Shown here piece after piece: positions 1 through 55,789 of a stretch of DNA of 64,000 bases (its first letter is position 1; each line of letters begins with the position of its first letter). The notes under the pieces were generated by a model. The model searched no databases. It was given only the letters and a program-made list of their open reading frames with translations, and was not told the DNA's origin. Where the stretch lies: the NCBI RefSeq assembly GCF_002571385.2, contig NW_019218217.1:104960-168959 (forward strand), read 5' to 3'. The stretch comes from Stylophora pistillata. Lineage: Eukaryota. Made by a program: the position numbers and the translations under genes.

Positions 1-349
1 AGCGAATAGTAAGCAAGGTCCACGTGAGAACCTTCGAGACCTTTTATTTGAACCTTGTTTGTACATTGGTTTTCAAGCTTTTTTAGCAAGCTTCACACTA
101 TTTAAGGACAATGGTGGTATTTCACAGAATTTACAAGCCGTTTATTATTAACATATTTTTTCAAGTTTCCACTGAATGAAGTGTGCAAGCGAAAGCGCCG
201 AAAGTTTAACATCGCTATTAATACAAGATAAATAGCTTGAAGTGTAAATACGTGTATTCATCGGTATCTTATTCCTTTAAAAACATAGGAGTGTTTCATG
301 CAAAGTCCAAAAACTTCAATCTTTTTTTTTTGTAGAAATTCATTACAAG

Positions 350-740
350 CAACTGCCATTAGCTAAGTCGTTAGGATGAGCATTGACTGAAAGTTGACGG
401 AAATATTCGCTGGAGAGTTGTTGAGCGATACATTGGTGAACAGTCCACCTAGAACTCTTGCTGTTAGATCATCACTGCCGTTATTCATTGATGTTGTGTT
501 ATTGCCAACTACTAATGGAAGTACAAGGCTGTTGACTTCAATTTCTTGCAAACGGCTTCAGTGCGTAGACCGTCGCTGGCGTTGGCAACTGTGACAGTCG
601 TGGTCGTACGACTGCAAATCCAGCCAACTTGCCTGACATCCTTCGTTGATTTTCTAAAAGAGTATGGCTGTAGGTGGATATTGAACCCGAGTTGACCTGA
701 CCCGTTAGCTCGGAGGTTGTTTTTTGTGGGCCATGTTTAC
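350..740 (-). pseudogene. Possible Crypton (tyrosine recombinase) C-terminal remnant
   Basis: Minus-strand frame reads ELTGQVNSGSISTYSHTLLENQRRMS, resembling the TGH-x-N..S..Y..Q..MS Crypton tail, followed by GGLFTNVSLNNSPANISVNF; frameshifted. Confidence 0.35.
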
Positions 741-1395
741 AGGATTTTCTCGCTTTCGCGTTGTCGCGAGCGAAAGAGGTTTTTCATGCCTCTCCAATAA
801 TTAACTGTTCAGTTCAAAACAAGGAAGAACCTCAAGCTCACTTTCAAAACCGCATTTTATGTTTTTGGCCCTTTAAAAGGTGACAATGGTTTTAAAATCA
901 TTTTAGATTGACTCAGAAACCAAACTTTGTAACGATAGTTATTCTGCTTACGTAGATGCAAAAAAAATATCACTTAGCCTCATTATCAACTCGCAATTCC
1001 ACCGTAAATAACTCGCTTCCTTAACCAATCAGAATGCAATATTGTGTTCAACGATGCCATTATATCGCAAATAGTGACTAGCCAAGGGCGTTATGATCAG
1101 GCTTTTTAATAACTTAAAAGTGTCAAAAGTGGTCCAAAACAAGGGAATCGGTTTGCAGGGTCCTTTTGCTTTCATCAATAACTAAATGAAACAAATCCTA
1201 TGTCAAATGTAGCTAACTGTTTCTTAACATTCTCGTAACTTCCAAGCTATCTCGATCGATATTGTTCAGCCAGTCGAAAGTAAGTGCATTGTATGCAAAT
1301 ACAACCAAAGGCTTATTTGAAATACGAGTACTTTGATCTCAAACAAAAAATTAAGGAATAGGTAAACATACGTAGCACAATAAATAGGTACTTAC

Positions 1396-1398
1396 ACC
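1396..1398 (-). CDS. Candidate 3-nt microexon GGT (array unit 1)
   Basis: ttgttttctttctttcatttcacctcatgctcaacag|GGT|gtaagtac. Confidence 0.55.
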
Positions 1399-1896
1399 CT
1401 GTTGAGCATGAGGTGAAATGAAAGAAAGAAAACAACAAATAGTCAACTGTTGTTAATCATTTTAGCATACTTATCATTAACCTTTATTCCCAGAAAAAAT
1501 GGCAGGAAACCTGTGTTGGTTGAAATCTCGTCTATTCGGAGACTACGTAGAAAGTTATTTTGCGAGTAGTGAATAGCGAAGGGCGTTACGATCAGACTTT
1601 TTAATACTTTAGAAATATGAAAAGTCGTCCAAAAAAAGGGAATCGGGTTGCAGGGCCCTTTTTGCTTTTATCAATAACAAAATGGAACAAATCCTATGTC
1701 AAATGCAGCTACCTGTTTGTTATTGTTCTCGTAACTTCCAAGCTATCTCGATCGATATTATTCAGCCGCTCGAAAGTAAGTGCATTCTATGCAAATACAA
1801 CCAAAGGCTTATTTGAAATACGAGTACTTTGATCTCAAACAATTAAATCAGTTAAGGAATAGGTAAACATACGTAGCACAATAAATAGGTACTTAC

Positions 1897-1899
1897 ACC
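1897..1899 (-). CDS. Candidate 3-nt microexon GGT (array unit 2)
   Basis: Same splice cassette as unit 1. Confidence 0.55.
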
Positions 1900-2393
1900 C
1901 TGTTGAGCATGAGGTGAAATGAAAGAAAGAAAACAACAAATAGTCAACTGTTGTTAATCATTTTAGCATACTTATCATTAACCTTTATTCCCAGAAAAAA
2001 TGGCAGGAAACCTGTGTTGGTTGAAATCTCGTCTATTCGGAGACTACGTAGAAAGTTATTTTGCGAGTAGTGAATAGCGAAGGGCGTTACGATCAGACTT
2101 TTTAATACTTTAGAAATATGAAAAGTCGTCCAAAAAAAGGAAATCGAATTGCAGGACCCTTTTTGCTTTTATCAATAACAAAATGGAACATATCCTATGT
2201 CAAATGGAGGTACATGTTTGTTATTGTTCCAGTAATTTCCAAGCTATATCGATCGATATTATTTAGCCACTCGAAAGTAAGTGCATTCTATGCAAATAAA
2301 ACCAAAGGCTTATTTGAAATACGAGTACTTTGATCTCAGACAATTAAATTAAGGAATAGGTAAACAAACGTAGCACAATAAATAGGTACTTAC

Positions 2394-2396
2394 ACA
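2394..2396 (-). CDS. Candidate 3-nt microexon TGT (array unit 3)
   Basis: ctcaacag|TGT|gtaagtac. Confidence 0.55.
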
Positions 2397-2890
2397 CTGT
2401 TGAGCATGAGGTGAAATGAAAGAAAGAAAACAACAAATAGTCAACTGTTGTTAATCATTTTAGCATAATTATCATTAACCTTTTTTCCCAGAAAAACTGG
2501 CACAAAACCTGTGTTGGTTAAAATCTCGTCTATTCGGAGACTACGTAGAAAGATATTTTGCAAGTAGTGAATAGCGAAGGGCGTTACAATCAGACTTTTT
2601 AATACTTAAGAAATATGAAAAGTCGTCCAAAAAGAGGAAATCGGGTTGCAGGGCCCTTTTTGCTTTTATCAATAACAAAATGGAACAAATCCTATGTCAA
2701 ATGTAGTTACCTGTTTGTTATTGTTCTCGTAACTTCCAAGCTATCTCGATCGATATTATTCAGACGCTCGAAAGCTAGTGCATTCTATGCAAATACAAGC
2801 AAAGGCTTATTTGAAATACGAGTACTTTGATCTCAAACAATTAAATTAAAAAATAGGTAAACATACGTAGCACAGTAAATAGGTACTTAC

Positions 2891-2893
2891 GGT
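2891..2893 (-). CDS. Candidate 3-nt microexon ACC (array unit 4)
   Basis: ctcaacag|ACC|gtaagtac. Confidence 0.55.
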
Positions 2894-3387
2894 CTGTTGA
2901 GGATAAGGTGAAATGAAAGAAAGAAAACAACAAATAGTCAACTGTTGTTGATAATTTTAGCATAGTTATCATTAACCTTTATTGCCAGAAAAAGTGGCAG
3001 GAAACCTGTGTTGGTTGAAATCTCGTCTATTCGAAGACTACGTAGAAAGTTATTTTGCGAGTAGTGAATAGCGAAGGGCGTTACGATCAAACTTTTTAAT
3101 ACTTTAGAAATATGAAAAGTCGTCCAAAAAAAGGGAATCGGGTTGCAGGGCTTTTTTTGCTTTTTTCAATAACAAAATGGAACAAATCCTGAGTCAAACA
3201 CAGCTACCTGTTTCTTATTGTTCTCGTAACTTCCAAGCTATCTCGATTGATATTATTCAGACGCTCGAAAGTAAGTACATTCTATACAATTACAACCAAA
3301 GGCTTATTTGAAATACGAGTACTTTGATCTCAAACAATTAAATTAAGAAATAGGTAAACATACGTAGCACAATAAATAGGTACTTAC

Positions 3388-3390
3388 CAA
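3388..3390 (-). CDS. Candidate 3-nt microexon TTG (array unit 5; upstream pyrimidine tract deleted)
   Basis: tagctgcag|TTG|gtaagtac; a ~300-bp deletion removed the normal acceptor context. Confidence 0.35.
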
Positions 3391-3580
3391 CTGCAGCTAC
3401 CTGTTTGTTATTGTTCTCGTAACTTCCAAGCTATCTCGATCGATATTATTCAGCCGCTCGAAAGTAAGTACATTCTATGCAAATACAACCAAAGGCTTAT
3501 TTGAAATACGAGTACTTTGATCTCAAACAATTAAATTAAGGAATAGGCAAAGATACGTAGTACAATAAATAGGTACTTAC

Positions 3581-3583
3581 AGA
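3581..3583 (-). CDS. Candidate 3-nt microexon TCT (array unit 6)
   Basis: ctcaacag|TCT|gtaagtac. Confidence 0.55.
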
Positions 3584-4849
3584 CTGTTGAGCATGAGGTG
3601 AAATGAAAGAAAGAAAACAACAAATAGTCAACTGTTGTTAATCATTTTAGCATACTTATCATTAACCTTTATTCCCAAAAAAAATGGCAGGAAACCTGTG
3701 TTGGTTGAAATCTCGTCTATTCGGAGACTACGTAGAAAGTTATTTTGCGAGTAGTGAATAGCGAAGGGCGTTACGATCAGACTTTTTAATACTTTAGAAA
3801 TATGAAAAGTCGTCCAAAAAAAGGGAATCGGGTTGCAGGGCCCTTTTTGCTTTTATCAATAACAAAATGGAACAAATCCTATGTCAAATGCAGCTACCTG
3901 TTTGTTATTGTTCTCGTAACTTCCAAGCTATCTCGATCGATATTATTCAGCCGCTCGAAAGTAAGTGCATTCTATGCAAATACAACCAAAGGCTTATTTG
4001 AAATACGAGTACTTTGATCTCAAACAATTAAATCAGTTAAGGAATAGGTAAACATACGTAGCACAATAAATAGGTACTTACNGTCACTGTTGAGCATGAG
4101 GTGAAATGAAAGAAAGAAAACAACAAATAGTCAACTGTTGTTAATCATTTTAGCATACTTATCATTAACCTTTATTCCCAGAAAAAATGGCAGGAAACCT
4201 GTGTTGGTTGAAATCTCGTCTATTCGGAGACTACGTAGAAAGTTATTTTGCGAGTAGTGAATAGCGAAGGGCGTTACGATCAGACTTTTTAATACTTTAG
4301 AAATATGAAAAGTCGTCCAAAAAAAGGGAATCGGGTTGCAGGGCCCTTTTTGCTTTTATCAATAACAAAATGGAACAAATCCTATGTCAAATGCAGCTAC
4401 TTGTTTGTTATTGTTCTCGTAACTTCCAAGCTATCTCGATCGATATTATTCAGCCGCTCGAAAGTAAGTGCATTCTATACAAATACAGCCAAAGGCTTAT
4501 TTTAAATAAGCAAAAAGTTCAAGGAATGGATAAACTTGCATAGCAAAAACGGTAATCATTAACCCTTACTCTTAGAAAAGGCCAGGAAAGCCGCGATGTT
4601 TCTAATCTCGTCTCTTTGAAATACTATCAAGAGATTTCTTTCGCTCTCGAATGACTCCGTGATAATCTATATATTCAGAATTCAATTTTTGCACGACATT
4701 CTACCTAAGAAGACAGCAACAAAATGTGGCGAATAAATAAAGGGAGAAAAAAACCTATGTTTGGAGGTCGAGGGTAAATATCTTAAGCGACATGGAATAT
4801 TGTTTACGGTTCTTGATTATGGTAAGTAGTGTTCTCAACACCGGTTTAT

Positions 4850-4851
<2 letters not shown>

Positions 4852-4895
<44 letters not shown>
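4852..4895 (+). repeat. (ATT)n microsatellite
   Basis: About 14 ATT units. Confidence 0.95.
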
Positions 4896-4896
<1 letters not shown>

Positions 4897-5383
4897 TTTG
4901 TAATTTTAATACATAATTGATGTGTTTCTTTTGCTTGTTTAGTTTTACATGCAGTTAGCTCGTTCGGAATTAGACGATCGAAGAGCTTTTCAAATAGCTT
5001 TGTCCATTGAACACGATGCGAAAGAAGGGAATGTAGTTTGAAACCTGAAGACTGTTTCGTCGAGAAATTCTATTATTGATCATTAAGTTAATTAATCCAC
5101 TAATAAGATACTTTAAAGTGATATCATAATACTAATGTAAGTGATTTGTCGGCTGTGGGCCCAACCGACTCACTTGGTAAATATCAAATCGTTTCGTATA
5201 CGTTATTATCTGAGCATTTCATAACAATGTGACTTTATTTTAAGATTCGAACGCACTTCTTTGATTGTCTGACACTGTAGTCGTCAATAAAGATGTTTGA
5301 TAATAGTGAACCAAAAGCCCACAACTGACGAAACATTCGAATCCCAATCGGTAACTCCGAGGACCGCGACGGATAACACTGAG

Positions 5384-8300
5384 ATGGCAGAAGAAGCCAA
5401 AAGCATTCGACGAACAGCCAAAGCAATGTTTGCCAGGATGCGCAATTAACTCCTGAAACCTATGGATGCCGACCAAGGACGAGAAATGGTCGAAGGTAAT
5501 TACGTGAAGCTTTCAGAAGCATGGGATATCGTTGAAAGTAAACACGATCTATACAGGATGTATTTAACGGATGAAGAACTGGAAGTCGTGGAGGGGTGGA
5601 TTACTGAGTTGCGGGGCCTGTTTGCAGAAGCGACAGCGCGTAAAATCCAGTATATACACAAATCAGTTAGATCAGAAATTGTCGTTCGAGAGAACACATT
5701 ACGTCATGAAACAGAAATGAAGGAGCGCGCGGAAAGAGAGAGGAAAGCAGAAGAGGCACTTACAATGCGCGCGAAAACGCAAACAGTTTTTAGCACTATC
5801 TGTAATAATAGAAAGCATTTTCTTGATAATAACATGGCCGCACATACTCTGGAAAGGTCTTTAAGACAGATAGAGGATGCGTATGCCGAGTGTAAAACTG
5901 CAAACGATGACGTTTTAGATTTAGCAGACCATGACACTTCAGAAAACGCTATAAAATTTGCATCACTGTNNNNNNNNNNNNNNNNNNNNNNNNNNNNNNN
6001 NNNNNNNNNNNNNNNNNNNNNNNNNNNNNNNNNNNNNNNNNNNNNNNNNNNNNNNNNNNNNNNNNNNNNNNNNNNNNNNNNNNNNNNNNNNNNNNNNNNN
6101 NNNNNNNNNNNNNNNNNNNNNNNNNNNNNNNNNNNNNNNNNNNNNNNNNNNNNNNNNNNNNNNNNNNNNNNNNNNNNNNNNNNNNNNNNNNNNNNNNNNN
6201 NNNNNNNNNNNNNNNNNNNNNNNNNNNNNNNNNNNNNNNNNNNNNNNNNNNNNNNNNNNNNNNNNNNNNNNNNNNNNNNNNNNNNNNNNNNNNNNNNNNN
6301 NNNNNNNNNNNNNNNNNNNNNNNNNNNNNNNNNNNNNNNNNNNNNNNNNNNNNNNNNNNNNNNNNNNNNNNNNNNNNNNNNNNNNNNNNNNNNNNNNNNN
6401 NNNNNNNNNNNNNNNNNNNNNNNNNNNNNNNNNNNNNNNNNNNNNNNNNNNNNNNNNNNNNNNNNNNNNNNNNNNNNNNNNNNNNNNNNNNNNNNNNNNN
6501 NNNNNNNNNNNNNNNNNNNNNNNNNNNNNNNNNNNNNNNNNNNNNNNNNNNNNNNNNNNNNNNNNNNNNNNNNNNNNNNNNNNNNNNNNNNNNNNNNNNN
6601 NNNNNNNNNNNNNNNNNNNNNNNNNNNNNNNNNNNNNNNNNNNNNNNNNNNNNNNNNNNNNNNNNNNNNNNNNNNNNNNNNNNNNNNNNNNNNNNNNNNN
6701 NNNNNNNNNNNNNNGCATCGATTCTTTCAGATATAACCGGAGTTTCAGTTTGAAAAACCTCAAACCTACTTTGCACACAACGATACTTGATAGAGATCAA
6801 CCATGTGCTTCATTTTATCAAATAATATCCAGTCACAAGAGAAACAGCTTGCCATTTCGGGCGAATTCTTCAATTGTACGAACTGGTTTGTGTTACGTTA
6901 ATATCAAAATAAAGTGGACGCGAGTACTATCAATACCATGGAAAAGCTTCATGAGGTAAACCTTGTTAATCTTAAACTTAGCCTAGAAATGATGAGAGAA
7001 AGCAATAATTACCTGAGGGAAACCAGTCTTCCGTGCGACGTCTTGCCATGCAAGTTCCTTTTTGTTGCGGTCTTTAAAATCTTTACTTGCTTTACCATAC
7101 AAAACTGGATATTGTCTCACCGCCTCGGAGAGAAGTTCATCTACTGACAGCTCTGCATTTGCCGAAGTGTCAAATCGATCGGAGTCCCCCATTTTGTTTG
7201 TGGATAGTTTCTCGAGGAGATATGGGTCAAAGTGAGCGATTATTCGTTGACCACCTTACGCTTATGCTTATATATGCTTATTTCACACGCGTTCGCACTA
7301 CGACATAAGCATAACAGCACAAGAAGAACGAACCTTGTTCGTTTTTCTTGTGCTTATGCTTATGGTTAGGTCGTGGGTGTTCTCACTTGCTTATGCTTGT
7401 GCTTGTGCTTATGCTTGCGCTTGTGCTTATGCGCAAGTGAAAACCAGCCTTTAGGCAGCGAGCCTGCAACTATCGTTAAAATCATTGACGACGATGTCAG
7501 GGAAATATGGAAAAGTCTAGATGAGAAGTCTGGAGATCCAGCAAAAGTTGCAGATGTCATTATTGACGGGATACGGAGAACTGGAATTATAAGAGAAGAA
7601 GAGGAGAAGAGATTTATTGAACTCGTAGAGATCATTGAAGAGGGCTATAGAGATCTAAAAAGGCTCGCTCTAGAATCGGAGATAACAAAAACAAGCTCTG
7701 TCAGTATCATAGAAAAGAAACTACCGGCGGACATTCGACGAAAATGGGCCGAGATTGTGAGCGCTGATAACAGTGCAGTTAATAAAACTAACAAATTTCC
7801 ATCGCTTCTTAACTTCCTACACAGCCAACGTAGAGCCATAGAATATGACACGGCCTCGCTAAGGGTACCAGCTGGTCCATTGAAAGCCGTCATTCACCAC
7901 ACAACTGCTGAGAAGGAAATCGATATGAAAGGCCAAAGACTGACGCAGGGTAAATGCTTAATTCAAGAGGGTGGCAAACATTCCGCTGAGGAATGTAAAG
8001 TCTGCTCGTCGCAGTCTCTTGACGAAAAGAAGACGCTACTGAAAGAGAAAAATGCTTGCTGGTATTGTCTTAAGGTCGGTCACCTGTCTCGTGTATGCAG
8101 AGCGAAGAAAACATGCAACATCAAAGACTGTCCATTGACACATCATCACTCTCTGCACGAAGAAATACAGGTGTTAAACACGTCCAACACCTCTGGGCCA
8201 ACAAACGTTTGTAGGAATACAGAGACTGACGCCTGCCTGTTACAAGTGCAGAAGATCAAAACCAAAAGGGTAACTTGAACGTGATGTGAGATAACGCATC

Positions 8301-11300
8301 CTCTCTATGTTTCGTTACCAATTCCAAAGCTAGAGAACAAGATCGTAAAGGAAAGAAAGGAGCTTTATCGAACATAAAGATTGGATCCCAGGATAAGAAG
8401 ATAAATACGATGAAATTTATACTACCCTTAGTTGATACACAAGGTAAAACAATACACATTGAAGCCTATGGTATTGATCAGATTACCTCAGACTTCGAAA
8501 GCATGAGCACCGAGAATCTGGCAAAGTTGTTTAACGGCGTGTCAAAGGACGATATCGCACGACCAGCGGGACCCGTCGACGTTTTTATTGGGTATGAGTT
8601 TGCTGCGTATCACCCTCAAAGAAAAAAGAACGCTAGACACCTTCTGTTACTCCAGACTTGATTTGGCCTTTGTATCGGAGTAACACACCCGTCGATAAAA
8701 GGCGAAATAAAAAAACATGACCTCAGTTACGCTCGAGTGCATCATGTAATAAAAGTAGAAGACTTGTACAAAATAGAGAATCTTGGCGTTGAAAGTGTTT
8801 AGCGTTGTGGAAGCTGCAAATGTGGACATTGTACTATTGGAAGTAAAAACTAAAGCATCAAAGAAGAAAAGGAGTTCGAGTTGATTGAGAAAAACATGAA
8901 GTTTGACGCTCAAGACAATAGATGGATCGCGGAGTACCCATTGATTTAAGATCCGTGCGATCTTCCTGATAATAGACGAGTGAGTAGCTCTAGCCATGCT
9001 GTATTCTACTGAGCGTAGACTGGAAAAGAATACACAACATGCAACTGTATACGATAACCAAGCTGGAGATATGGTTCTATAGGGGGTCGTCCGTAAACTC
9101 AGCAAAGAGGAACTTAACACTTACAAAGATGCTATCCATTACATTTCCCATCCGGAGGCGCTCAAACCAGACTCTAAATCTCCTCCAGTTACAATCGTGT
9201 TTAACAGTAACGCAAACTACATTGATTACGTATTTAATGAGTACTGGGCAAAGGAGCCAGACTTGCTTAACAGTCTGCATGGAATACTTGTGCGATTTCG
9301 CGAGAATGAAGTAGCATTCATAGGTGATATCAAGGAGATGTACCATACCGTTAAAACAACAGTGCTAGATCGACACACTCACCGATTTTTATGGAGGGAC
9401 ATGGTCACCGACAGAGCACCCGACACCTATGTGATAAAAAGAGTTTCACTCGGAGATAAGCCCTCTGCAACCATTGCTACGATGGCCCCGCGCAAGACAG
9501 CAGAGATGGGAAGTGAGCGATATCTGGATGCCGCAAAAATCGTGAAACATATATGGATGGCATTATATAAAGTACCACAGACCTTCCCACTGCCCTAAAA
9601 TGAATACAGGACATCAAGACCTTAATTATTAAGGGCAGATTTGAACTAAAAGAATGGATATTTTCCCGTGACTCAAGTAACAGTAAAAAGTATCTATCAA
9701 ATGAGTCAAACGTAGCGACCGAAAAGGTACTAGGAGTCAATTGGGACCCAATCCACGACCATTTGTGCTTTTCAGCAAAGCTTAACTTCTTTTCGAATCG
9801 GAAACGCGGAGTACAGAAAGGCAATCCTAGTAACGATTCGAAACTCACACCATCACTTACGAACTGATGATATTGTCAGAAGCCAACAGTATGTACGACC
9901 CTCTTGGACTGGCGGGGCCCTTCACAGTGCGGGCCAAAATCTTTAAGCGACATTTGTGGGAAAATAGCGAGAAGCTCGACTGGGACGATCCGATACCAGA
10001 AAATAATAAACAACAATGGTCAGCATTCCTTAATAAATAACCTGAAATGGATCGAGTCAAATTTTTCGGTGAGATGTTTAAAGCCTTCGGACGCAGTTTG
10101 CAATCCTGTTCTTATTATATTCTGTGATGCTTCAGAAGGCATTTACGGCTCCTGTGCGTATGTACGATGGCAACGACAGAGCGGAGGGTTTGCGTGCAAT
10201 TTGATTGTTTCTAAAAATCGCGTTGCCCCGACAAAAATATGTCTATCGAAAAAGTAGAGTTGTGTGGAGCAGTGTTAAGTGAGCGGCTTGAATCCTTGAT
10301 CGATAAAGAAAGCAGATACTTTTTTGAGAAATCCTATTACGTAGTTGACTCTCAGATAGTGCACGCAATGTTACAGAAAAGCTCCTACGGTTTGAATACC
10401 TTCGCCGCTACACGTATCGGTGAGATTCAGGAAGGAACCAACATCGAGGATTGGTATTGGTGCGAAAGTAAATTTAACATTGAAGATTGGTTAACTAGAG
10501 GAAAGAAGCCAAGTGAAATTAGTCTTCACAGCGATTTGCAACGAGGAGCTCTTTTTCTTAAACAACCCGAGAGCGAGTAGCCTATTTCTCGTAATTATTC
10601 TGAAGTAAGAATACCTCCAACAATTATGAAAGTAGTCCACACAGGGAATGTAACTGTTAAAGGCGACTTGGCGTCTAGAATCAAGATCGAACGATTCTCA
10701 GATTATAACCGTCTATCGAGAGTGACAGCAGTTATTTTAAACCTTTATCGCAGAGAACCCAAGGTAACCTTTAAGAACGCATAACAGGAAATAACAAGTA
10801 AAGATGTAGAGGCAGCGGAGGTATTCTGGATCAAAGAGGCACAGCGAAATATGGAGAACGATATAAAACATGGTAGGTACAGACGTTTGTGTCGTCGATT
10901 ACGAGATGATGGCATATATGTGATAAGTGGCCGTGCTGAAAAATAGCTAGAAATAGCCTACAACAAGAAAGATATACTCCTACCATGGCAGCATCGATTT
11001 GCTCGTATTTACTAGGAGTACATTCATGCTAAGGGGCATCACGGAGTTCTTACAACAGCAAGCAAGATCCGTGCAAGGTTCTGGATAACCAAATAACTTA
11101 AAATGATCCAATCTGTAAAGATCAACTGTGTGACGTGTAAGAAACTTGACAAGAAACTATCAGGACAAGTACTGGGAAACCTTCCTAAAGAAAGACTCAA
11201 ACCGAAACCCTCATGATATTCCACATCAATTGACTTATTTGGATCCTTTACGATCCGTGACGCAGTTAAGAAGCGTTCTACATCAAAAGCGCATGGGGTG

Positions 11301-11703
11301 ATTTTTAATTGCGCTGGAACCAGAACTGCATATTTGGAGCTTGCACCTGACTACAGCCCAGAAAGTTTTCTTATGGTTTTAAGCAGATTTGTCTTACTTA
11401 GGGAATATCCATCGAAAATTTATGCCGACAATGGCGCGAAACTTCTCGCAGCAACTCAGGAACTTGAGAAAGTTACGAAATCTTTACATTTGGAGAAGCT
11501 AAAAATTCTTTGAGGTATGGAAGGTTTTGAATGGAACTTCACGCCAGCTGATGCACCAGGGCAAAATGGAACATCAGAATCTCTCGTCAGATCAGTCAAA
11601 AGATCACTCAAGACTGCTATTGGAGAAAGCATCCTCACGTTTTCAGAAGTTCAAACGGTACTCTTTAAAGTTGCTAATCTAATTAATGAAAGACCTATAA
11701 CCG
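5384..11703 (+). mobile_element. Degenerate BEL/Pao LTR retrotransposon (gag-protease-RT-RNaseH-integrase), 3' truncated, antisense to the host gene
   Basis: Gag zinc knuckles (CWYCLKVGHLSRVC, CNIKDCPLTHHHSLH); RT (PDLLNSL..RFRENEVAFIGDIKEMYH, HRFLWRD); Pao RNaseH (IFCDASEGIYGSCAYVRW, SKNRVAP, ELCGA); integrase (YADNG, WNFTPADAPGQNGTSESLVRSVK). Many stops and frameshifts; LTRs not defined. Confidence 0.93.
6716..7450 (-). mobile_element. PIF/Harbinger-type element end with MADF-domain ORF fragment, inserted in BEL gag
   Basis: ORF 6983-7192 (LSEAVRQYPVLYGKASKDFKDRNKKELAWQDVA) is MADF/Myb-SANT-like. The end has subterminal TGCTTA/TGCTTG repeats, then gtgaaaaccagcct followed by TTA. The other end is in the N gap. 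Confidence 0.7.
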
Positions 11704-12549: not shown

Positions 12550-13950
12550 AATAATAATAAAGTATTATCGTTTGTCTCACGATATGGTCACTTGAGATGT
12601 GGATCGCGACATTTCGACTGCATCCGGCTATTCTTCATCAGGAGATAAGGTCTACTGACTTCAGGTCTTTTTATAAAGCAGGATGCTCCGCTGTGATTGG
12701 TTGGTATTCCCCAGCTGTGATTGGTACGATTCCTAGATGACGAGATGATGGTGTCTTTCGACGTATAGTTCCTTTTTACCAACGTCCCTGTCAACGCCGC
12801 TGTTCAGGCCGCATTGCAAAAACTGTAAAACGACCCCAGCCTCCCAGAACACACGGCGCTAACACCAGCTCAAATCGCCGAACTTCTGAATTTTGTTTTG
12901 AGAGCCACATACTTCCAGGTCCTCACGGCTGCCGCACCAGTATCGTACACAGGAAGCCCACACACACTAATCAATACTGAGCGTATGATTCACACCAACC
13001 ACAATCAGTAAAACATGGTATTGTTAAGTGTCTCCAAGAGTGCACTAACGCCTCCTGACAAAAGCTTCTGTCATCTCTCAGGAAAAGAAACATTTTTCAT
13101 CCGCTCTTACCTCTAATGACTACCCTATTTCTTCCTTGCAGAAAGTCACCAAGATCAGAAAATCTAACGCTGCTTCCGAGCCCGCAATCGATTTGAAGTG
13201 CACTGCAGTGTTACTTTATGTTAAAGGTCTTTCGGAACAGCTTCGCCGCTGCCTACAACAACAAAGCGTACGCGCTGTCTTCAAGTCGGAAATCGTAATA
13301 TGATCAGAGCTGGTAAGAGCAAAAGACGCTGTCGATTCGGCCAAACAAGACGGCGTAGTTTACAGGATTCCCTGTGAATGCGGCAAAGTTTACATCGGTG
13401 AGACTGGAAGACCAATGTACGACAGAATGACGGAACAAGACCGAGAGATCCGACTAGCTTGTACCCAAACCTCCGCCATTTCAGAGTACCCCTACAATAC
13501 CGGACACCAACCGCTTTCAAGTGAGATTAGGTTTATTAATCGAGATCCTCACTGATAAAATCGCAGGGTGAAAGAGGCTATTCACATAAGACTTCACCCT
13601 TAGAACATCAATAAGGACAGCGGATTAGAAATTCTTGAAGGGTGGATGGCTACGATCAAGAAACACAACAACAGGAGAACCGTACGACAGCTGACTACCG
13701 AGAGAACGTCTCACCAACATCAAGGATTAAAACGCGCCGATCATAGCTGTGGAATACCAAACAATGACAACGGAACATCCTGCTTTATAAGAATACCCGA
13801 AACCAGTCGACCTTATCGCCTGATGAAGACTAGCCGGATGCAGTTGAACGGGCGCGATCTACATCATAAGTGACCATATCGTGAGACAAACCATAATACT
13901 TTATTATTATTGTACTTTACCATGATGAATAAGCACAACCTTATTTACGA
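12550..13950 (+). mobile_element. 5'-truncated Penelope-like retroelement (RT tail + GIY-YIG endonuclease) with inverted pseudo-LTRs
   Basis: Plus-strand remnants MVSFDV..LFTNVP and GVVYRIPCECGKVYIGETGR (GIY-YIG), VKEAIHI; 12550-12725 is an inverted diverged copy of ~13740-13910. Confidence 0.9.
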
Positions 13951-14099
13951 AATAATGAAATAAGTTATAAACTTTGGATTAAAAAAAAACAAATGAATAT
14001 AAATAAAATNATTAATAACATTGTCTTAATTAACTTAATATGTAAATGATGAAACCGATAATGCATTAGAGGGTTAAAAGAAAAATAATGGCTACTTAC

Positions 14100-14102
14100 A
14101 GC
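14100..14102 (-). CDS. Candidate 3-nt microexon GCT
   Basis: Long pyrimidine tract (cctcttt...ctgttatc) ...gtgacaataag|GCT|gtaagta. Confidence 0.55.
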
Positions 14103-14266
14103 CTTATTGTCACAGGGTCAGTTAAGTTGATAACAGAAAAAAGAGAAAAAAAGAGGAAACAATAAAACATAAATCAATAGGTGTAAATTGACTTAGAACT
14201 TGTCAAAATTGTTATCATTCAACATTTCATAATTCCAGTGGGTTAACCCGTTAAAATAATACTTAC

Positions 14267-14269
14267 ATG
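14267..14269 (-). CDS. Candidate 3-nt microexon CAT
   Basis: ctaac ctttttctttttattactttcttctcctggtaactgcttattacag|CAT|gtaagta; clear branch point, pyrimidine tract, acceptor and donor. Confidence 0.6.
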
Positions 14270-15158
14270 CTGTAATAAGCAGTTACCAGGAGAAGAAAGT
14301 AATAAAAAGAAAAAGGTTAGCTCAATTAAAGAAAGAATATTGCACTAATGATAAATGTTATTTAATGAAGCTGGATTTATCATATGGGCTAAGGATTTGA
14401 AAAATTCCTCTCGTTGTCGGATTAATGGACTAGATGCCTTGAGGATTAATAAATGAACAACAATCCAAGGTAACATAGGATATTTGTAGGCAACAGATTG
14501 ATACATGTCTTTCCACTTGTTTCTTGCGTGACAAAGTTGTTTGTCAGAATACCGAAAATATTTCGACCTTTTAAAGCGAACTTTTTAACAGAAGCATTTT
14601 TGCTGAATACTGTCGAACCCTGTATTAAGCGGCACCGTAGTAGAGGTCACCCTGTATTAGTTGATCAGTTATCAGTCCCGAAATTTTTATTCCTTAATCA
14701 ACGTAAAATTATCACTTCCATTAACGGTTGTGATCAGCCTTTACTGAGTCCCAACGGCCCGTTTGCATTGTCTTTCACCTGTATCGAACGGTCACATAAA
14801 GCGAACCACTCAAATAAAACTAAGAATGATCTCTCTGTAGAATTGAATCCATATTAAATTCCCGAAATCAATGCACTTACTATTACTGGGCGAATTCTTT
14901 TACATGGATTGGTCAATTATGGTACAAATGACTTTTTTATCGTTTCCTTATAGTAACCTATTCTGTGGAACCGGCATGGAGCGGTTACCAAGCAATTTCC
15001 CGCAGGTTAACGTTTAAGTGTGAAATGTTCAGAAGGCAACCGTGGACGATACTCCTACTCTTGTACGTTGGATCAGCTATGATCTGATCGGCCCCAAATA
15101 ACGAATATGAAATATAAATAAGACCGATACAACGTAGATAAGTATATTTTAAGACGGA

Positions 15159-15199
15159 GCACTATATTTCGGCTGGCCAAACCAGCCTTCTTCAGGTGC
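15159..15199 (-). ncRNA. Minimal type I hammerhead ribozyme motif (Penelope/retrozyme-type fragment)
   Basis: Minus strand gcac-CTGAAGA-a-ggctgg-tttgg-ccagcc-GAAA-tata-gtgc: stem I, core, stem II and a short palindromic stem III. Confidence 0.65.
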
Positions 15200-16264
15200 A
15201 TTGGGAATTAACAGAGAATTGGGGTAATGCTTCGTAGTTAAGACAGGTTTGACTGTGTATAGGACGCTTGCAGAAATTGCCAGATTTTCACTTCATTTAT
15301 TCTTGTTCGATTAATTATGCTAAATGATGATAAGTTTGCTAAATATATGAGCGGAGGAAGAAACAGATTAGAAAAAAAAAATATTCTGCTGTTTTGGCTT
15401 TGTAATTTATTTCGGAATTAGTTGCACATCTGACCGGAATGGAGAGTTTTTTGTTTGTACTTTATCTTTTGAATGTCTGTCGCTCAATAGTGTTTTTTTT
15501 TTCGGGGTATTTAGCAAAGGAAATCGTGGCAAGATAACTCTTATTTCGTACTTTTAATTCCAATATAATCAGAATTGAACTGATGGAAAATAGTAAGAAT
15601 CTCTTGTTTCCAATTATTGATGAAATCATTGCTAAAGTGAGCTAATGCAATAAGTGTATCAAGGTCGACAGCGCCCGCTGATTACTGTATCATTATGACG
15701 CAAATAGATAAGATAAGATAAATGCTACTTCTTTATAGAGGCTCCTCTAAGTTAACATGCCATAATATTTTGCAGTTCATTTCATGGTAATAAATATCCT
15801 TCATGGTTCGAACTTTTTAAATCAGGGAGATATTTTTCTTCTATCAGGTTTGTCACTGTTTACTCTATTTTATTTTCCAACTACGCTCCGTAGAGTACAA
15901 ATAACGCCTACGACGGGTACAAATATAACTCGTTATTTGTACTCGAGAGAACCGGTTATACAGGTTTTCTTGCATCGCACAAGCGATGAATTGGAGTTAC
16001 AAAAACTGGTGGAGAATTGAAATCACTTTTCCGACGAGGAAGAGTCGGAATGACAGGCGAATATTGATCCAAGTTTATCGGATATATCGAACGAAGAAAA
16101 GCAGTTAGACGACGATGAAATTTCATCATCTTGTGGAACAAAACAGAAACAGCAACACGACAAAGGGTGAATTCTGTTCCGCTTCGCCTACTTCTGTCAC
16201 ACATTTCCGTAAAGAAATGTCCGCGAAATTCATCCGCACTCAAATTACAATTTGGCGTTTGGGA

Positions 16265-16430
16265 TAATAAGTAACTTATTAAGCGTTTTGTTGTGTAGTA
16301 TCGCTGAGTATTTCTTACTCGTTACTTGTATTTTGACTCGCCCAACGGGCTCGTCAAGATACGGCACAACTCTTAAAAATACTCAGCGATACTACACAGT
16401 AAAACGTCTCATAAAATATATTAATTTCGT
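16265..16430. repeat. Palindromic MITE-like element
   Basis: 22-bp perfect inverted repeat tgtgtagtatcgctgagtattt (16292-16313) / aaatactcagcgatactacaca (16377-16398). Confidence 0.7.
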
Positions 16431-17415
16431 ATGAAACAGAACAGACATTAACCTCGCTAAAGTAATTTCGCGACGATCTGCTGTATCTTATGCATGGGTT
16501 GCATTTTGTCACCCTCGTTGCTCAAGAACTGAATTGTAAGAAGCATCCAATTCAATTTGGATTGGCGAACTAGCTCAAATAACTTAGCCCCAGTCTCTCT
16601 CCAATGGCTATATGGAGTTGAGGAGGATAGGAATACTAGTCCTTCCACGTGGAAATTACTGCCGTAGTAAATTTTGGGGGAATTTCGTCGGCATTTTGCT
16701 AACAGCAGAAAATTAAGTACTGTAAGTCAGAAGAAAATGACGAAAACATTGAGAACACACATGACAATTACCCTGTTATATTCCTAATCATCAAGAAAAA
16801 CAAAACACCTCACGAACATGACGCATTCATAAAAAAAACAAGTCAACACTGTATAGGAAGATATATTTTGACTTGTTATGACTGATGGTCAAAGAAATAC
16901 TTTTAAGTTCCCATTGGGATTTAGCCACATAGGGCCGGTTATGTATAAGAGGTTTAACCCAAACCCCGGTTTTACGCAAGGACTGGGCCTCGAAGATTCT
17001 CTGTAAGAGGGTTAATTTTATTGGTTAAAGAAATGTCCTTCCACGATTAGCTTTCGGCCCTCTTGACACTGTTTACAAAAATAGATATTGATATAAACTG
17101 ATTGGGATAAATTGAAGATGGCTTAGAACGAGTTTTGTTAAACAACGGCTAAACTTTGTTTAAATGAGTAGCCTGTGGACTCTACGACATTGCTTACCCG
17201 ATAAGAGTACAGTACGTGTGTCACTTATGAAACTTCTTCTCCTATTTTATTTTTTAATTTTTATTTTAGTACCGAGCATAAAACCATCCATCACTTGACT
17301 TCTATTTAAGCACATGTCACGACCCTGTTTACTTTGTTTTCGATACGGTAAATGAAAGATACATAAAGATACGTATTATCTTCGTTACAATATTTAGTTT
17401 TAAGCTTTCACTTAC

Positions 17416-17418
17416 CGC
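17416..17418 (-). CDS. Candidate 3-nt microexon GCG
   Basis: ccttttctctgctctc...aaattgcatcag|GCG|gtaagtg. Confidence 0.55.
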
Positions 17419-17782
17419 CTGATGCAATTACATGTATTTCATCCATCGTGTGCGATATTGAGAGCAGAGAAAAGGATAGAGATAGGCAGAAATCGAGCAT
17501 TATAACATAATGTTCAGTTCAACTATAATTTAGTTACAGTAGGTAAAGTGCACACCTTCCCATCAATCTGACAGCTGACCTTAGTTCTTTTTCTTTCACC
17601 AACTGTTTTCGAGATATGTCTTTTATTTTTCTCTTACAACGACTGGTATTCAAAAGTCAAATTCTCATCCTCATCTTTTCATGCACGTTTGCGGTATTTA
17701 GGAATGACTATGGAAAGTGGAGCAGAAACAAATGTAAACAGGTAAATTATTAACTTCAGTAGTGTAATCAAAAATCACTCAC

Positions 17783-17785
17783 ACG
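17783..17785 (-). CDS. Candidate 3-nt microexon CGT
   Basis: ctaac (branch-point-like) tttattgttgttctgtatttctctac...aaacaag|CGT|gtgagtg. Confidence 0.55.
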
Positions 17786-18513
17786 CTTGTTTATTTCACA
17801 GGTGCAGCACATGAGTAGAGAAATACAGAACAACAATAAAGTTAGGGAGACTAGACAAAAACACTAGTATACCAATAAATGAATTATGTGACGATCAATT
17901 TGAAGCTTTAAAATCCCTCCGGGCATTTGAACCTTTGAAGATTGGTTTGTTTAAATTTCCGCCCCCAGGACCAAAATTGTGTTCAAATTATCCAAGTGCT
18001 GGATTTGATTGTCAATATTATTCCTACATGCCTACTAAGCATTAGAGCCTAGATTTAATTTATTTTAACTTTACTCAACTCCGTATTAAAAGGTAAAACA
18101 CTTCTATTCTGCTGGAAAGACTTGAAACTTCCGGTTTAAACTCCCCACCACAACCAGGCTGAGCTCAAATTCCCCAACATAAGAGCACGGACGGCAGTCA
18201 AATGTTCATGGGTCGCTTGGCGGGATGTTGAAGGAAAAGCGAAATTAAAGGAGTCCTGAAGCTAAGGGAGGCTAAAGCAAAGTTATTCAGCAAAGTGTTG
18301 GATTCATTGTATAATCTTGAAACATGACGTATTTTCCGGGCCAATACACAGATCTCGATTTTTGGATGAAGTGCAGCACCTCTTGATCTTTTCTTTTGTC
18401 TCTATCGGCGCTCAGCTGGTAGAAAGGGTACAGACCAGGAGTAGTCAGCAGTTTTTTGGTCATGTGACATGTTAGTAGTAACATTTTTATTACGAAAACT
18501 AAGTAGCACTTAC

Positions 18514-18516
18514 TTC
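18514..18516 (-). CDS. Candidate 3-nt microexon GAA
   Basis: ttttcttttgtttttcctatgttattttttatgtactgcgcctcggaaatatcag|GAA|gtaagtg; AG-free run from the pyrimidine tract to the acceptor. Confidence 0.55.
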
Positions 18517-19303
18517 CTGATATTTCCGAGGCGCAGTACATAAAAAATAACATAGGAAAAACAAAAGAAAAGTGAAATTCACCGTTAATTATACGATCGT
18601 GCATCATCATGTTGAAAAAAAAAAAGGAAACAAAAAAAAAAGGCATAGAACATAAGGGAAATTATTAAGTTATTTCCTATAAAATGTAAGATAATTAATT
18701 AAATGACATTCACCAGCGATTACGATGACGTATCCCCATGTTAAAATAAAAGAGCATAGAAAACTGGGGAAAGTATTAAGTTATTTTCTATGCAACGTCA
18801 GAAAATTAATCAAATGTATTTGAATGCTTTTCATTTTAAGAGGAGGATACACAGGCGTTTTTTTTCCTTTTTCTTTTTTTTTTCCTACGTTCATTAAACG
18901 TTGTCAAAAGAGTTTATATTTTCTTGACGTGGTACATGCACTTTTATACTCCCCTGAGTTTAGCAATAAATCCCAAGCAGTATGTAAGACGTCAAATTTC
19001 ATTCATTCTCAATAGTTAATTTCAACGCTAAATGACATGAGGAAAACATTCCGAATTATCTCAGGTAAATGTTTGTTATACTAGGGACGGTCCAAAATTT
19101 GTTTTGAAAGAAAAAAAGGTTCGAAACAGATTCCACGCCCGTAAGCGTAAATGCCCCAAGTAACTAGCTGTTAGGCTTTTCTTTGACAAAGTGGGATTAA
19201 CATTGTACTGAAATAGTTAAAGAAAAGTATAAATGAAATAGAATAAAGAAATGATTAGATAAGCGAACACATAAAGCATATTTACGATAAAAAAAAAACT
19301 TAC

Positions 19304-19309
19304 GCTGAG
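19304..19309 (-). CDS. Candidate 6-nt microexon CTCAGC
   Basis: gctttttgtttttatcattttcg...ataaaag|CTCAGC|gtaagtt; weaker AAG acceptor. Confidence 0.45.
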
Positions 19310-19858
19310 CTTTTATTTCCACGTGAATGATTCGAAAATGATAAAAACAAAAAGCAATCTCAAAGTCAATATATATATTTAGTAGCTAGGATTTGCTCTA
19401 TTCCTGGCTTTTGCACATTAAAACAAGCAAAAATAATAACATCGACTCAAATGATAGCTGAATTGAGAAAATCATCCTATGTAGTCAGTAGATATAGCTA
19501 TAGCAGCAACCTTTATTTTCTCTATTTAGTCCATATTATACATAATTATTGTTATTTAACAGCGGANNNNNNNNNNNNNNNNNNNNNNNNNNNNNNNNNN
19601 NNNNNNNNNNNNNNNNNNNNNNNNNNNNNNNNNNNNNNNNNNNNNNNNNNNNNNNNNNNNNNNNNNNNNNNNNNNNNNNNNNNNNNNNNNNNNNNNNNNN
19701 NNNNNNGAGAGAAAAAGACGAAGAGACGGCTCTTAGTATTTGTTTGTATCCCGACATGGTTATCACAGCCCGACTTGAATGACAGCGAGCCATCAGACCT
19801 GAGGGAAGGAAGACTATAAAATAAGACAACAGTGATCATAGTAATAAAACAAACTTAC

Positions 19859-19969
19859 GGCACTGCTGTTCATCTGAGTTATCACCACAGTCATCTCCGA
19901 ACCCACAACGCCTCCATTTACTAAGACACTTTCCATTTGCACAGGTGAACTCATAGTTCTCACACTTTC
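19859..19969 (-). CDS. Host gene exon: second LDL-receptor class A repeat KCENYEFTCANGKCLSKWRRCGFGDDCGDNSDEQQC
   Basis: 111-bp phase 1-1 exon, gtacag acceptor and gtaagt donor; FxCxNGxC and DCGDNSDE motifs. Confidence 0.9.
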
Positions 19970-22189
19970 CTGTACATTAATGCAAATAACATCGATTCAA
20001 AGACAAGAATATTGAGCCTGTGCATCGAAGAAAATGGAGAGCGCAAAGATAACCGGGAAAAATCCAATCAATTAAACCAGAGACACATTACTTGGAGCGT
20101 TCAACTCCCGCACTGAGCCTATGTCAAGGCATTGTCGGAGAATGGTTTATTTCAGACTATCTTTTCCCGGGAAATAATTTGAATTTAACAACTAGCTAAA
20201 CGTAATTGGTCGAAGAGCTTACGTGGGCGGCCGGGGAATCTCATACCGCGGTAATTCAAACTAAAAATAGATTTTTCTATTGAAAACATCGCGACATAAA
20301 CAAAGGTGAGTTGAACGCTTGAAGAAATGGCTCTTGATTAAACATGTTCTTTAGTTGTCAAGTCAAGACTTGGTGGTTGGATCATAATGCAATTTTCAGC
20401 TTGAACCCTCCTCCCCCTCCCCCCCTCTCCCCCATCATTCTACGAAGTAGTAATTGTCGTGATAAGCAATGAATCTGAAGCTTCACAGAAAGTTTACCCG
20501 TTTGAAAGATTGGTAAAGTTTGCCAATAAGGACTCCTGAAGTTAACATTTAAACTAAATATGGTTTGTTTTATTTCATCTCCATCCATTATATACAATGC
20601 AAGAGATCATTATTCTTCTTTTTTTTCTTCACTTCGCTCTATTTTTTCCAATTGCATTCTACTTGATTGATCTACACTTTTTTCCCTTGACCTGAAATTG
20701 CAAAATTTTAAATGTTGTTGCAAAAATAGTCGTGCTACTGGCAACTGGAAGACTTTAGAATTTATTCTCCCACCATCACTAACAATTCCGGTCACGACGA
20801 ATCCGCGCGGCGTCAGCTATGCTTCATGTGAATCTAACATGGTGGCTGTGCGTAAGAAGAAGGGTGTCGATAAAATTGATTACGTACAACTCCACACCTC
20901 AAAAGGGGCCGAAAACTTACCCTTCAACGCACAACGTGGAAAGAATAATATACCGGCGAAAGGTTCGCAATGTGAGTATTAACAGACCTTCGAAGAAAGA
21001 AATAACTGACTCCGTGTTTTCCGTATATATTTTGAAATTTTTACTTAAGAGGCTGCCTACAAAAATTAATAACCTGATGGATTGTTTGAAGTCCAATGTG
21101 GAAATAAATACATACGAAGTTCAAAAAGAAAAAAAAATGCCGGCGTTTTGTTTATTTATTTAATTTTTTGTTTGCGTTTAAGATGTACTTGACCTTCAAG
21201 TCAGGAATAGTCTGGTTTTTACCTTCAATCCATAATTTTCTTCTAAAATCGCGTTTAGAATTTCTGCGTAGCCGATTGCCAATGCATTACTTTTCTTCAA
21301 ATTGTACAAGGTTTTTAAACAGTCGCATGTGAATGCGACTTAAAGGCCACCTGTTCGCACTAACATACTGATATTTTACGTATGTTAAGGCTATCATTGA
21401 TGGAAACACTATCAGATTCCCTAAACCGGGATAAAGCAGATTTCTGGAGTAAATCAGACCTCTCAGAGATCCCAGAAATACTTGCCCATGCGATATGAAC
21501 AAAAGTGTTATTCTTATTTTTCAAATTTTAGCGTTAGATCCGGCGGGAAACTACCGGAAGTGAACTTTCTCACACGTTTGACTGCTGGCCAAAAGCTCCT
21601 ATCCAAACTCCTATTCCAGAAAGACTAGCAGCTTTAGAAACTATTCAAAACTAGAGAAATTGGGCTTCGAACAAGTGTTGAATCTCTGGAAGGAAGTTGA
21701 TATTGCAGGTAGAAGCTTGTTTTTCTTTCTCGCAAGGCTCAGAATGTTGTTTGTGTTCTTTGCAAAGAAAAAGGATGGAGCAAACAATTCACTATGGGTC
21801 TCCACCCCCGCGAGTGAAGTACCAAGCACAGCAATACAGGTATCGACCTGTTTGTAATTTTTGGCTTTTTAGTGTATCTTTGCCAGCTATAAAGGCTTAA
21901 GCGCGTCGCTTACCTGGATACAAAACAAAGGAAAAATGAAGTGTTTTTTTTTTTACTTTAAATCTTATTATTTACAGTAGTACACAGACAGCAGTCGTTA
22001 TATTGGCATCCCGCTGCGGCAAAATAAGTATGTAAAATAGGTGTCCTAGCACAGTTGCCATGTTTTTGCCCTCCTTACCTCCAACTACCAAACAAACATA
22101 CCTCCGTTGACCCCCAACTCGACGATCGACGCTGCGGGCACGAAATTATTAATTTTTTTTGTTTGGCCTCAACAGTGGCTATTAATTTT

Positions 22190-49842: not shown

Positions 49843-50060
49843 CGGTCAGAAATGCAGACTAGGTATAAATTACAGACTGCAAACCGGCTACGAAATGCAG
49901 AATAGGTACAAAATGCAGACTGCAAACCGGCTAGGTAATGCAGAATAGGTACAAAATACAAACTGCAAACCGGGTATCAAATGCAGAATAGGTACAAAAT
50001 ACAGACTTCAAACCGTGTACGAAATACAGAATAGGTAAAAAATGCAGAATGCAGACTGGA
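49843..50060 (+). repeat. Minisatellite, ~42-bp unit of two AAATGCAGA-headed halves, ~5 copies
   Basis: aaatgcagactgcaaaccggctacgaaatgcagaataggtac repeated with variation. Confidence 0.85.
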
Positions 50061-52491: not shown

Positions 52492-52497
52492 GGCCAG
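52492..52497 (-). CDS. Candidate 6-nt microexon CTGGCC between the two LDLa exons
   Basis: ccttttctttcatgttttatctgcaccaatcag|CTGGCC|gtaagtac; first AG after the pyrimidine tract; frame-preserving, giving the linker ...QC-T-G-R-KC... Confidence 0.55.
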
Positions 52498-53410: not shown

Positions 53411-53521
53411 TGCATTGTTCGTCTGATCCATCACTACAGTCCCTGTACCTATCGCAGCGTTCAGACGCATGGTTACACTTTTGTTGATTTGCACAAGTAA
53501 ACTGATCGCCTTCACAAGTTA
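53411..53521 (-). CDS. Host gene exon: LDL-receptor class A repeat (I)TCEGDQFTCANQQKCNHASERCDRYRDCSDGSDEQC
   Basis: 111-bp phase 1-1 exon, ctcatag acceptor and gtaagt donor, six Cys, F-x-C and DCxDGSDE LDLa signature. Confidence 0.9.
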
Positions 53522-55731: not shown

Positions 55732-55789
55732 TCGCAGTTGTGAAGGGAACAGCTACCAGCATGAGCAATAGAACAGCCTGGGGATCCAT
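55732..55789 (-). CDS. Host gene first coding exon: signal peptide MDPQAVLLLMLVAVPFTTA (ends phase 1)
   Basis: Minus strand catag|attgtaATG GAT CCC CAG GCT GTT CTA TTG CTC ATG CTG GTA GCT GTT CCC TTC ACA ACT GCG A|gtatgt. Hydrophobic core ending T-T-A; phase 1 joins in frame to the LDLa exon at 53521. Confidence 0.7.

Follow-up and report, generated by a model that had tools for sequence, protein, structure and literature searches.

In a 64,000-nucleotide stretch of the genome of the coral Stylophora pistillata (RefSeq assembly GCF_002571385.2, contig NW_019218217.1, positions 104,960 to 168,959 of the forward strand; the whole stretch is called the window here), a tandem array was found whose units are most variable at three nucleotides enclosed by invariant or nearly invariant splice-like signals. 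Judged from its sequence, the array has truly arisen by tandem amplification; it lies in a locus that is present in many copies in this species and encodes proteins with two LDLa domains. The best available reading of the array is that it consists of amplified modules, each made of an intron and a microexon. We hold this reading tentatively, with a confidence somewhat short of an even chance, on the basis of the anatomy of the units, the conservation of their signals and one supported 6-nt exon of the same family. Three rival explanations, discussed below (non-coding use of the sites, a copied cassette and decaying relics), retain considerable weight.

The array occupies positions 1072-4510 of the window on the minus strand and has a period of 497, with some units of 501 and one of 193. 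Tandem Repeats Finder (TRF) placed an array of period 497 at 1072-3387, with 4.7 or more copies and 92% matches, and a pair of 193-bp half-units at 3201-3580, and by alignment the array was extended beyond the end called by TRF to about 4510. This confirms the tandem array of about 500 bp described in an earlier note on this DNA, which had been made from the sequence alone. That note had also called the units near-identical, which had to be corrected, as identities range from 91 to 100% and one unit (3379-3571) is a short form of 193 bp with an internal deletion of 304 bp. Each full unit is composed of an intron-like body of 494 or 498 nt plus 3 nt. Seven junctions read GGTACTTAC-NNN-CTGTTGAG on the plus strand, which on the minus strand gives a set-back pyrimidine tract, CAG, 3 nt and then GTAAGTACC. 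Six triplets (GGT, GGT, TGT, ACC, TTG and TCT) were read in the window as they had been listed before. The acceptor of the TTG triplet has no pyrimidine tract because the intron-like piece that lies upstream of it in the gene (3391-3580) is the short unit. The N in the seventh unit had been taken as a sign that collapsed copies or haplotypes disagree at the triplet; breaks at the junction do fit disagreeing copies, but this N marks a contig join and leaves no readable triplet. Head-to-tail copies of one unit, as in a tandem repeat or satellite, were found in arrays on at least 10 contigs.

Variability along the unit was quantified as per-column entropy in 28 full-length units from 8 loci, with triplet columns counted at both unit ends. 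The triplet columns took the top six ranks with 1.28-1.94 bits, compared with a mean of 0.36 bits (95th percentile 0.92, best non-triplet column 1.23). The entropy spike foreseen in the earlier note was thus obtained, the three triplet columns being the most variable of about 500. Junctions were also surveyed without selection for any motif, using BLAST hits that span the junction (n = 58). AG was changed in none of the 58, whereas the rate of change was 2-9% at the positions of GTAAGTA, 60-67% at the triplet positions and 9% on average elsewhere. Conservation is thus higher at the splice signals than in the remainder of the unit. An assembly-wide pattern search returned 53 junctions, all with a 3-nt spacer, a length that the pattern itself fixed; in a looser search allowing 0-12 nt, 3 nt were again found at every junction except the N join. 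More than 20 different triplets occur.

The difference between triplets amounts to about 0.65 per site whether the bodies diverge by 1.4% or by 30%, and in all classes between. Triplet diversity has thus reached saturation and does not follow the history of the bodies, which supports a diversity far above the neutral expectation. In one pair, bodies that differ at 2 of 494 positions are flanked by triplets that differ at 5 of 6 bases. A "master" body was found to be 99-100% identical in at least seven arrays on different contigs, where it is flanked by different triplets, while the other units are about 96% identical to this body and about 92% identical to one another. Seven of the 11 master units lie next to an assembly gap; these may represent a consensus that the assembler made from short reads, or genuinely identical repeats at which the assembly broke off. 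With the master units excluded, the roughly ten-fold excess of triplet change persists. An intrinsic mutation hotspot was considered and rejected: the old array on contig C532 has units with no more than 80-85% likeness, but ACG is still read at 9-10 of its 14 junctions. This is what neutral decay from one ancestor predicts, and it argues against a built-in hotspot at the triplet.

The earlier note had proposed unequal crossover for the amplification of the units, with diversifying selection or targeted change at the exon. Plain unequal crossover cannot create new triplets. Their source may be selection for difference while the bodies are homogenised, the writing of a new triplet with each added unit, or some other process. 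Even without splicing of the triplets the pattern would be unusual, as no standard process (neutral drift, unequal crossover, plain gene conversion) explains it. For amplified intron-microexon modules, the following course of events can be envisaged. The array would have grown from one site by unequal crossing-over, and the bodies would be kept alike by exchange between arrays, a likeness probably exaggerated in part by the collapse of copies in short-read assembly. The triplets would stay different as the only part of the unit that is seen by selection acting on the product.

To place the array in the genome, the S. pistillata assembly (397.6 Mb, 5513 contigs) was searched with the unit, and 108 matches were obtained, distributed over at least 12 contigs. 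Array flanks are common to the copies at 82-93% identity, the units being more alike than the flanks, and on C433, C285 and C1040 LDLa exons lie upstream of the arrays on the same strand. These shared flanks and upstream exons argue that the arrays lie in paralogous copies of one locus and are neither a free satellite nor a scattered transposon. Neither the unit matches nor the pattern search revealed any copy in the assembly outside the paralogous loci. A dispersed repeat unrelated to the gene, which the earlier note had named as an outcome that would speak against it, was accordingly not what was found, since all matches lie in paralogous copies of the same locus. The junction pattern had no match in JGI metagenome contigs, and a protein search with a 41-aa frame that crosses the junction also returned no match.

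On C561, C1844 and C532 (near 9 kb), a single site with the triplet ATT is present where other paralogs have an array, as would be expected if the array arose when one site was duplicated in tandem. These solo-site paralogs have only about 90 nt around the junction in common with the array unit, and the conserved part is thereby identified as a module of this length.

In another explanation, the 494-nt body would be, or would once have been, a mobile intron-like cassette, introner-like or copied through a circular or RNA intermediate, that is added head to tail beside copies already present and receives a new 3-nt spacer each time, so that triplets would differ from birth. The phylogeny of the units is star-like around the master body, the units exceed the paralogous flanks (82-93%) in similarity, and two master units have identical flanking triplets (GGT/GGT), all as expected for such a cassette. 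However, the unit has no terminal inverted repeats and is linked to no enzyme, and its copies are confined to the paralogous loci, with no dispersal into unrelated sites or genes as would characterise a transposable element or introner. Flanking triplets are unmatched in most units; identical triplets on both sides, as matching target-site duplications would require, were seen in only 4 young units. The master units, moreover, are often gap-adjacent and may be a collapsed consensus. We consider a mobile cassette quite improbable.

In the locus that holds the array, a signal-peptide-like exon, an LDLa exon, a 6-nt site, a second LDLa exon, a chain of short sites and the array follow one another on the minus strand (Table 1). 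Both LDLa exons exceed the Pfam cut-off (PF00057, LDL-receptor class A), and the locus is predicted to encode small secreted proteins with two LDLa domains and a signal-peptide-like hydrophobic leader. When the LDLa exon served as the query of an exhaustive protein search, only generic LDLa proteins and four short coral models were retrieved. The array sits inside a chain of about a dozen non-repetitive sites that are conserved between paralogs and lie both upstream and downstream of it, and further sites of the AG-NNN-GTRAGT type were found beyond the left end of the window. Sixteen such sites were counted on the minus strand and three on the plus strand, the latter number being the chance expectation. 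Although the window and C1040 are only 65-75% identical in this region, both AG and GTRAG have been retained at all 4 sites that they share. At sequence level, the lengths in multiples of three, including that of the 6-nt site, together with AG and GTRAGT, make this a run of sites of the kind seen in micro-exon genes (MEGs).

Table 1. Features of the two-LDLa locus, the array and a neighbouring insert in the window.
Feature	Position	Strand	Basis or remark
Signal-peptide-like exon, MDPQAVLLL start	55732-55789	-	like N-termini of RefSeq paralogs
First LDLa exon	53411-53521	-	Pfam PF00057, E 3e-7
6-nt site CTGGCC, then GTAAGTACC	52492-52497	-	same site in C1040 translated
Second LDLa exon, 111 nt, phase 1 at both ends	19859-19969	-	Pfam PF00057, E 7e-9; RNA depth ~3 on the gene strand
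6-nt site CTCAGC behind AAAAG	19304-19309	-	sequence; codon inference
AG-GAA-GTAAGT site	18514-18516	-	stretch absent from C1040
AG-CGT-GTGAGT site	17783-17785	-	kept in C1040 as CCT
AG-GCG-GTAAGT site	17416-17418	-	kept in C1040
AG-CAT-GTAAGT site, non-repetitive	14267-14269	-	kept in C1040 as CAT
AG-GCT-GTAAGT site, non-repetitive	14100-14102	-	kept in C1040 as GCG
Decayed insert resembling a long terminal repeat (LTR) retrotransposon	5280-11700	+	gag, zinc knuckle, weak DUF1759 match
Contig join, single N right behind CAG, 5 letters including N	4082-4086	-	comparison with other arrays
Triplet TCT	3581-3583	-	sequence
Triplet TTG	3388-3390	-	acceptor without pyrimidine tract
Triplet ACC	2891-2893	-	sequence
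Triplet TGT	2394-2396	-	sequence
Triplet GGT	1897-1899	-	sequence
Triplet GGT	1396-1398	-	between CAG and GTAAGTACC

A splicing product is best supported for the 6-nt site between the two LDLa exons. The RefSeq protein P0152, which belongs to the C1040 paralog, has Thr-Gly between its two LDLa domains. Read in the phase left by the first LDLa exon, CTGGCC gives Thr-Gly, and this match means that the 6-nt exon is translated in the RefSeq model. The site is unchanged in the window and its donor, GTAAGTACC, is that of the array. All such joined readings are codon arithmetic on short pieces.

We then asked whether the triplets look coding. Their middle base is C or G in 79%, GGN and ACN together account for 46%, and variability is highest at the third position, followed by the first and then the second. 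This composition is a weak signature of phase-0 codons, mostly for Gly, Thr, Ala, Pro and Ser. The LDLa exon leaves phase 1, and the lengths of the recognised sites are all multiples of 3. Read in phase 1, none of 61 junction-spanning codons was a stop, compared with 3.4 expected when the order of triplets was shuffled (P = 0.014), in a test made on hand-curated chains from non-independent paralogs in which the array order is possibly misassembled. A previous statement that no combination of skipped sites makes a stop did not survive the inclusion of downstream sites, as a T-ending triplet followed by AAC or GAT gives one.

Several observations weigh against amplified intron-microexon modules. 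Two raw-read runs and two sets of RNA contigs were aligned to 14020-19990, and no joint was listed at any site in this alignment, by a method that cannot place 3-nt pieces. RNA at 17220-17500, with a depth of about 5, crosses the GCG site unspliced. The RefSeq models stop 4-8 residues past the second LDLa exon, about 15 kb upstream of the array. The model of the C1040 paralog passes over two 3-nt sites and terminates in an exon close by, and the C-terminus of the Pocillopora verrucosa RefSeq model is TQRK, which, as deduced from the codons, would fit use of the acceptor of a 19309-type site with the donor then read through. The codon-position pattern fits phase 0, in conflict with the phase 1 indicated by the upstream exon and by the stop test. 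How 5 of 6 triplet bases can differ beside bodies that are 99.6% identical is poorly explained by selection alone. In addition, the arrays come from a short-read assembly, and the order and number of the units, as well as the "master" units, may be unreliable. Of the intron-microexon units proposed in the earlier note, the anatomy, the conserved signals and the solo-site paralogs thus speak in favour, but splicing of 3-nt exons has found no support in the RNA aligned to 14020-19990.

The same RNA data bear on a different explanation, in which the pairs of acceptor and donor separated by 3 nt are used by the spliceosome but are non-coding. They would act as stepping stones or decoys that help to remove or control an intron or 3' region of great length and rich in transposons, comparable to recursive splicing or to the repeated units of host genes for clustered small nucleolar RNAs (snoRNAs) or microRNAs (miRNAs), and the 3 nt would only keep the two signals at a constant distance. 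Conserved splice signals around a free spacer agree with this, as do the gene models and the RNA coverage, which suggest that the main mRNA ends before the array, and the locus is full of transposon inserts. Against it, neutrality would predict a spacer that changes at the pace of the remaining unit, whereas the triplet diverges ten times as fast and has C or G at its middle position in 79%. In a search of Rfam with both strands of 1-5900 and E values up to 10, only chance-level matches to SNORD108 on the opposite strand were obtained, which rules out the described ribozyme, snoRNA and spliced-leader families. No stable hairpin was found in the unit (whole-unit fold z = -0.65, best 90-nt window -22 kcal/mol). 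The unit hence holds neither the embedded ribozyme of a retrozyme or hammerhead element nor the snoRNA or hairpin of a snoRNA or miRNA host unit. At true recursive sites GT follows AG without any gap, while here 3 nt always lie between them. Taken together, we regard a purely non-coding use of the sites as unlikely.

A plus-strand exon inside the unit, running from AG to GTAAGT, was also examined and rejected as coding: its donor is lost in the old array, its 67 nt break the frame and it shows no 3-periodicity. It coincides with the block of the unit that is best conserved between old and young arrays. On the gene strand this block spans unit positions of about 106-195, which in the window corresponds, for instance, to about 1700-1790, and it is 85-92% identical, versus 62-80% elsewhere; it holds a TCGATCGA palindrome and several retained CpGs, and coding periodicity was not found in it.

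The quality of the assembly at the junctions deserves separate attention. In several arrays single Ns lie 0-5 nt behind CAG, and what comes after them is either unrelated sequence or a portion from further along the unit; they are therefore contig joins and not triplets. Such joins near the junction were noted at L026:5529, L028:3420, L028:5107 and L025:6026 (gene orientation) as well as at window position 4082. That contigs break exactly at the triplet fits what is expected if reads disagree there. Array length and order are probably underestimated, with the assembly breaking at the hypervariable spot, and the gene models of the two-LDLa family are probably truncated. In practical terms, loci of this kind break short-read assemblies at the triplet itself.

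These shortcomings could be taken further, to a decaying satellite in dead or dying gene copies, in which the splice-like motifs are relics and the pattern is largely an artefact of assembly. The short-read origin of the data and the joins at junctions are in line with this, many paralogs are interrupted by gaps and transposons, reads aligned to 14020-19990 gave no RNA support, and the old array on C532 behaves neutrally. Yet none of the 58 junctions has lost its AG, and the signals have persisted in paralogs with no more than 65-75% identity. An assembly consensus cannot yield more than 20 triplets at one spot of fixed length, and the composition of the triplets is non-random. A satellite in decay thus appears improbable.

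Amplified intron-microexon modules can be compared with several known systems. Exons of Schistosoma MEGs are reported to measure 3-81 bp (PMC10526429). MEGs and the coral locus have in common a secreted product with a signal peptide, a run of very short symmetric exons (candidate exons in the coral) with much longer introns, and a multi-copy family with variable exon content. The coral locus differs from MEGs in its cnidarian host, its unrelated sequence and the two LDLa domains that precede the candidate exons, and in that these are almost all exactly 3 nt long and lie in near-identical tandem introns.

Imprinted snoRNA and miRNA clusters of the SNORD116 and C19MC type consist of tandem units of an intron and a tiny exon whose sequence matters little. 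The coral units resemble these in their make-up, but no embedded snoRNA or miRNA was found in them. Recursive splice sites, or ratchet points, have zero nucleotides between AG and GT. Like them, the coral sites combine an acceptor and a strong donor side by side within very long introns; unlike at ratchet points, 3 nt would stay in the RNA. In genes of the major histocompatibility complex (MHC) type, introns are homogenised while exons are kept diverse. The coral array shares the likeness of intron bodies across copies and the difference of the putative exon part, although the "exon" is 3 nt long and the contrast is far stronger. Microexons that depend on SRRM4 and its eMIC domain are bilaterian, and the eMIC domain is held to be bilaterian as well. 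The coral sites are similar to these in the set-back pyrimidine tract, the strong donor and an upstream TGC (UGC in bilaterian neural microexons). In a sample of 13 distinct AG-NNN-GT sites from the window, L021, L027, L048 and L050, a TGC motif was present at most 25 nt upstream of the acceptor AG at 8 sites, compared with 26% for all AGs on the same strand (P = 0.008).

A more far-reaching version of the intron-microexon reading, to which we give only a small chance of being right, is a cnidarian system of micro-exon diversification, in which arrays of single-codon exons, spaced by a homogenised and possibly self-copying intron cassette, are spliced combinatorially. If so, a secreted scaffold of two LDLa domains would receive a different short tail in each paralog, perhaps in each cell, and each addition of a cassette would create new "codons". 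Should the triplets be spliced at all, micro-exon gene families would be extended beyond flatworms for the first time, and in the most extreme form known, a peptide to which each exon of an expanding tandem array adds a single codon. It would also offer a natural system for studying how the spliceosome defines 3-nt exons.

Some further features of the paralogous loci were noted. In the regions C433:98,990-98,440 and C1040:23,060-22,340 (L050 and L046), which belong to two paralogs that are only 79% alike overall, an identical block of about 33 nt lies some 200 nt beyond the last 3-nt site that they share. It is preceded by a pyrimidine tract and AG and may be a terminal exon. Homology between the paralogs stops about 350 nt beyond it. 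In XP_022777558 (P0147, "CD320 antigen-like"; L035/L036 on C1663), the C-terminal 33 residues match a repeat present at more than 140 places in the genome, and this model probably ends in a transposon-derived exon.

Other elements were found in the neighbourhood of the array. The LTR-like insert listed in Table 1 lies between the chain of sites and the array; its protease-, reverse transcriptase- and integrase-like frames are full of stops, and it contains a run of Ns at 5970-6714. A segment at 12551-13910 is bounded by inverted copies of a sequence of about 80 nt; a frame within it resembles a GIY-YIG endonuclease of the kind carried by Penelope-like elements. A tandem repeat of 43 bp (4.8 copies, 86% matches) is located at 49849-50053, in the interval that separates the LDLa exons. 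Adjacent to the array on the plus strand, a short open frame runs from an ATG to a GTAAGT donor (4793-4822), with a (TTA)n run at 4846-4896 beyond it; this frame could be the first exon of a plus-strand gene.

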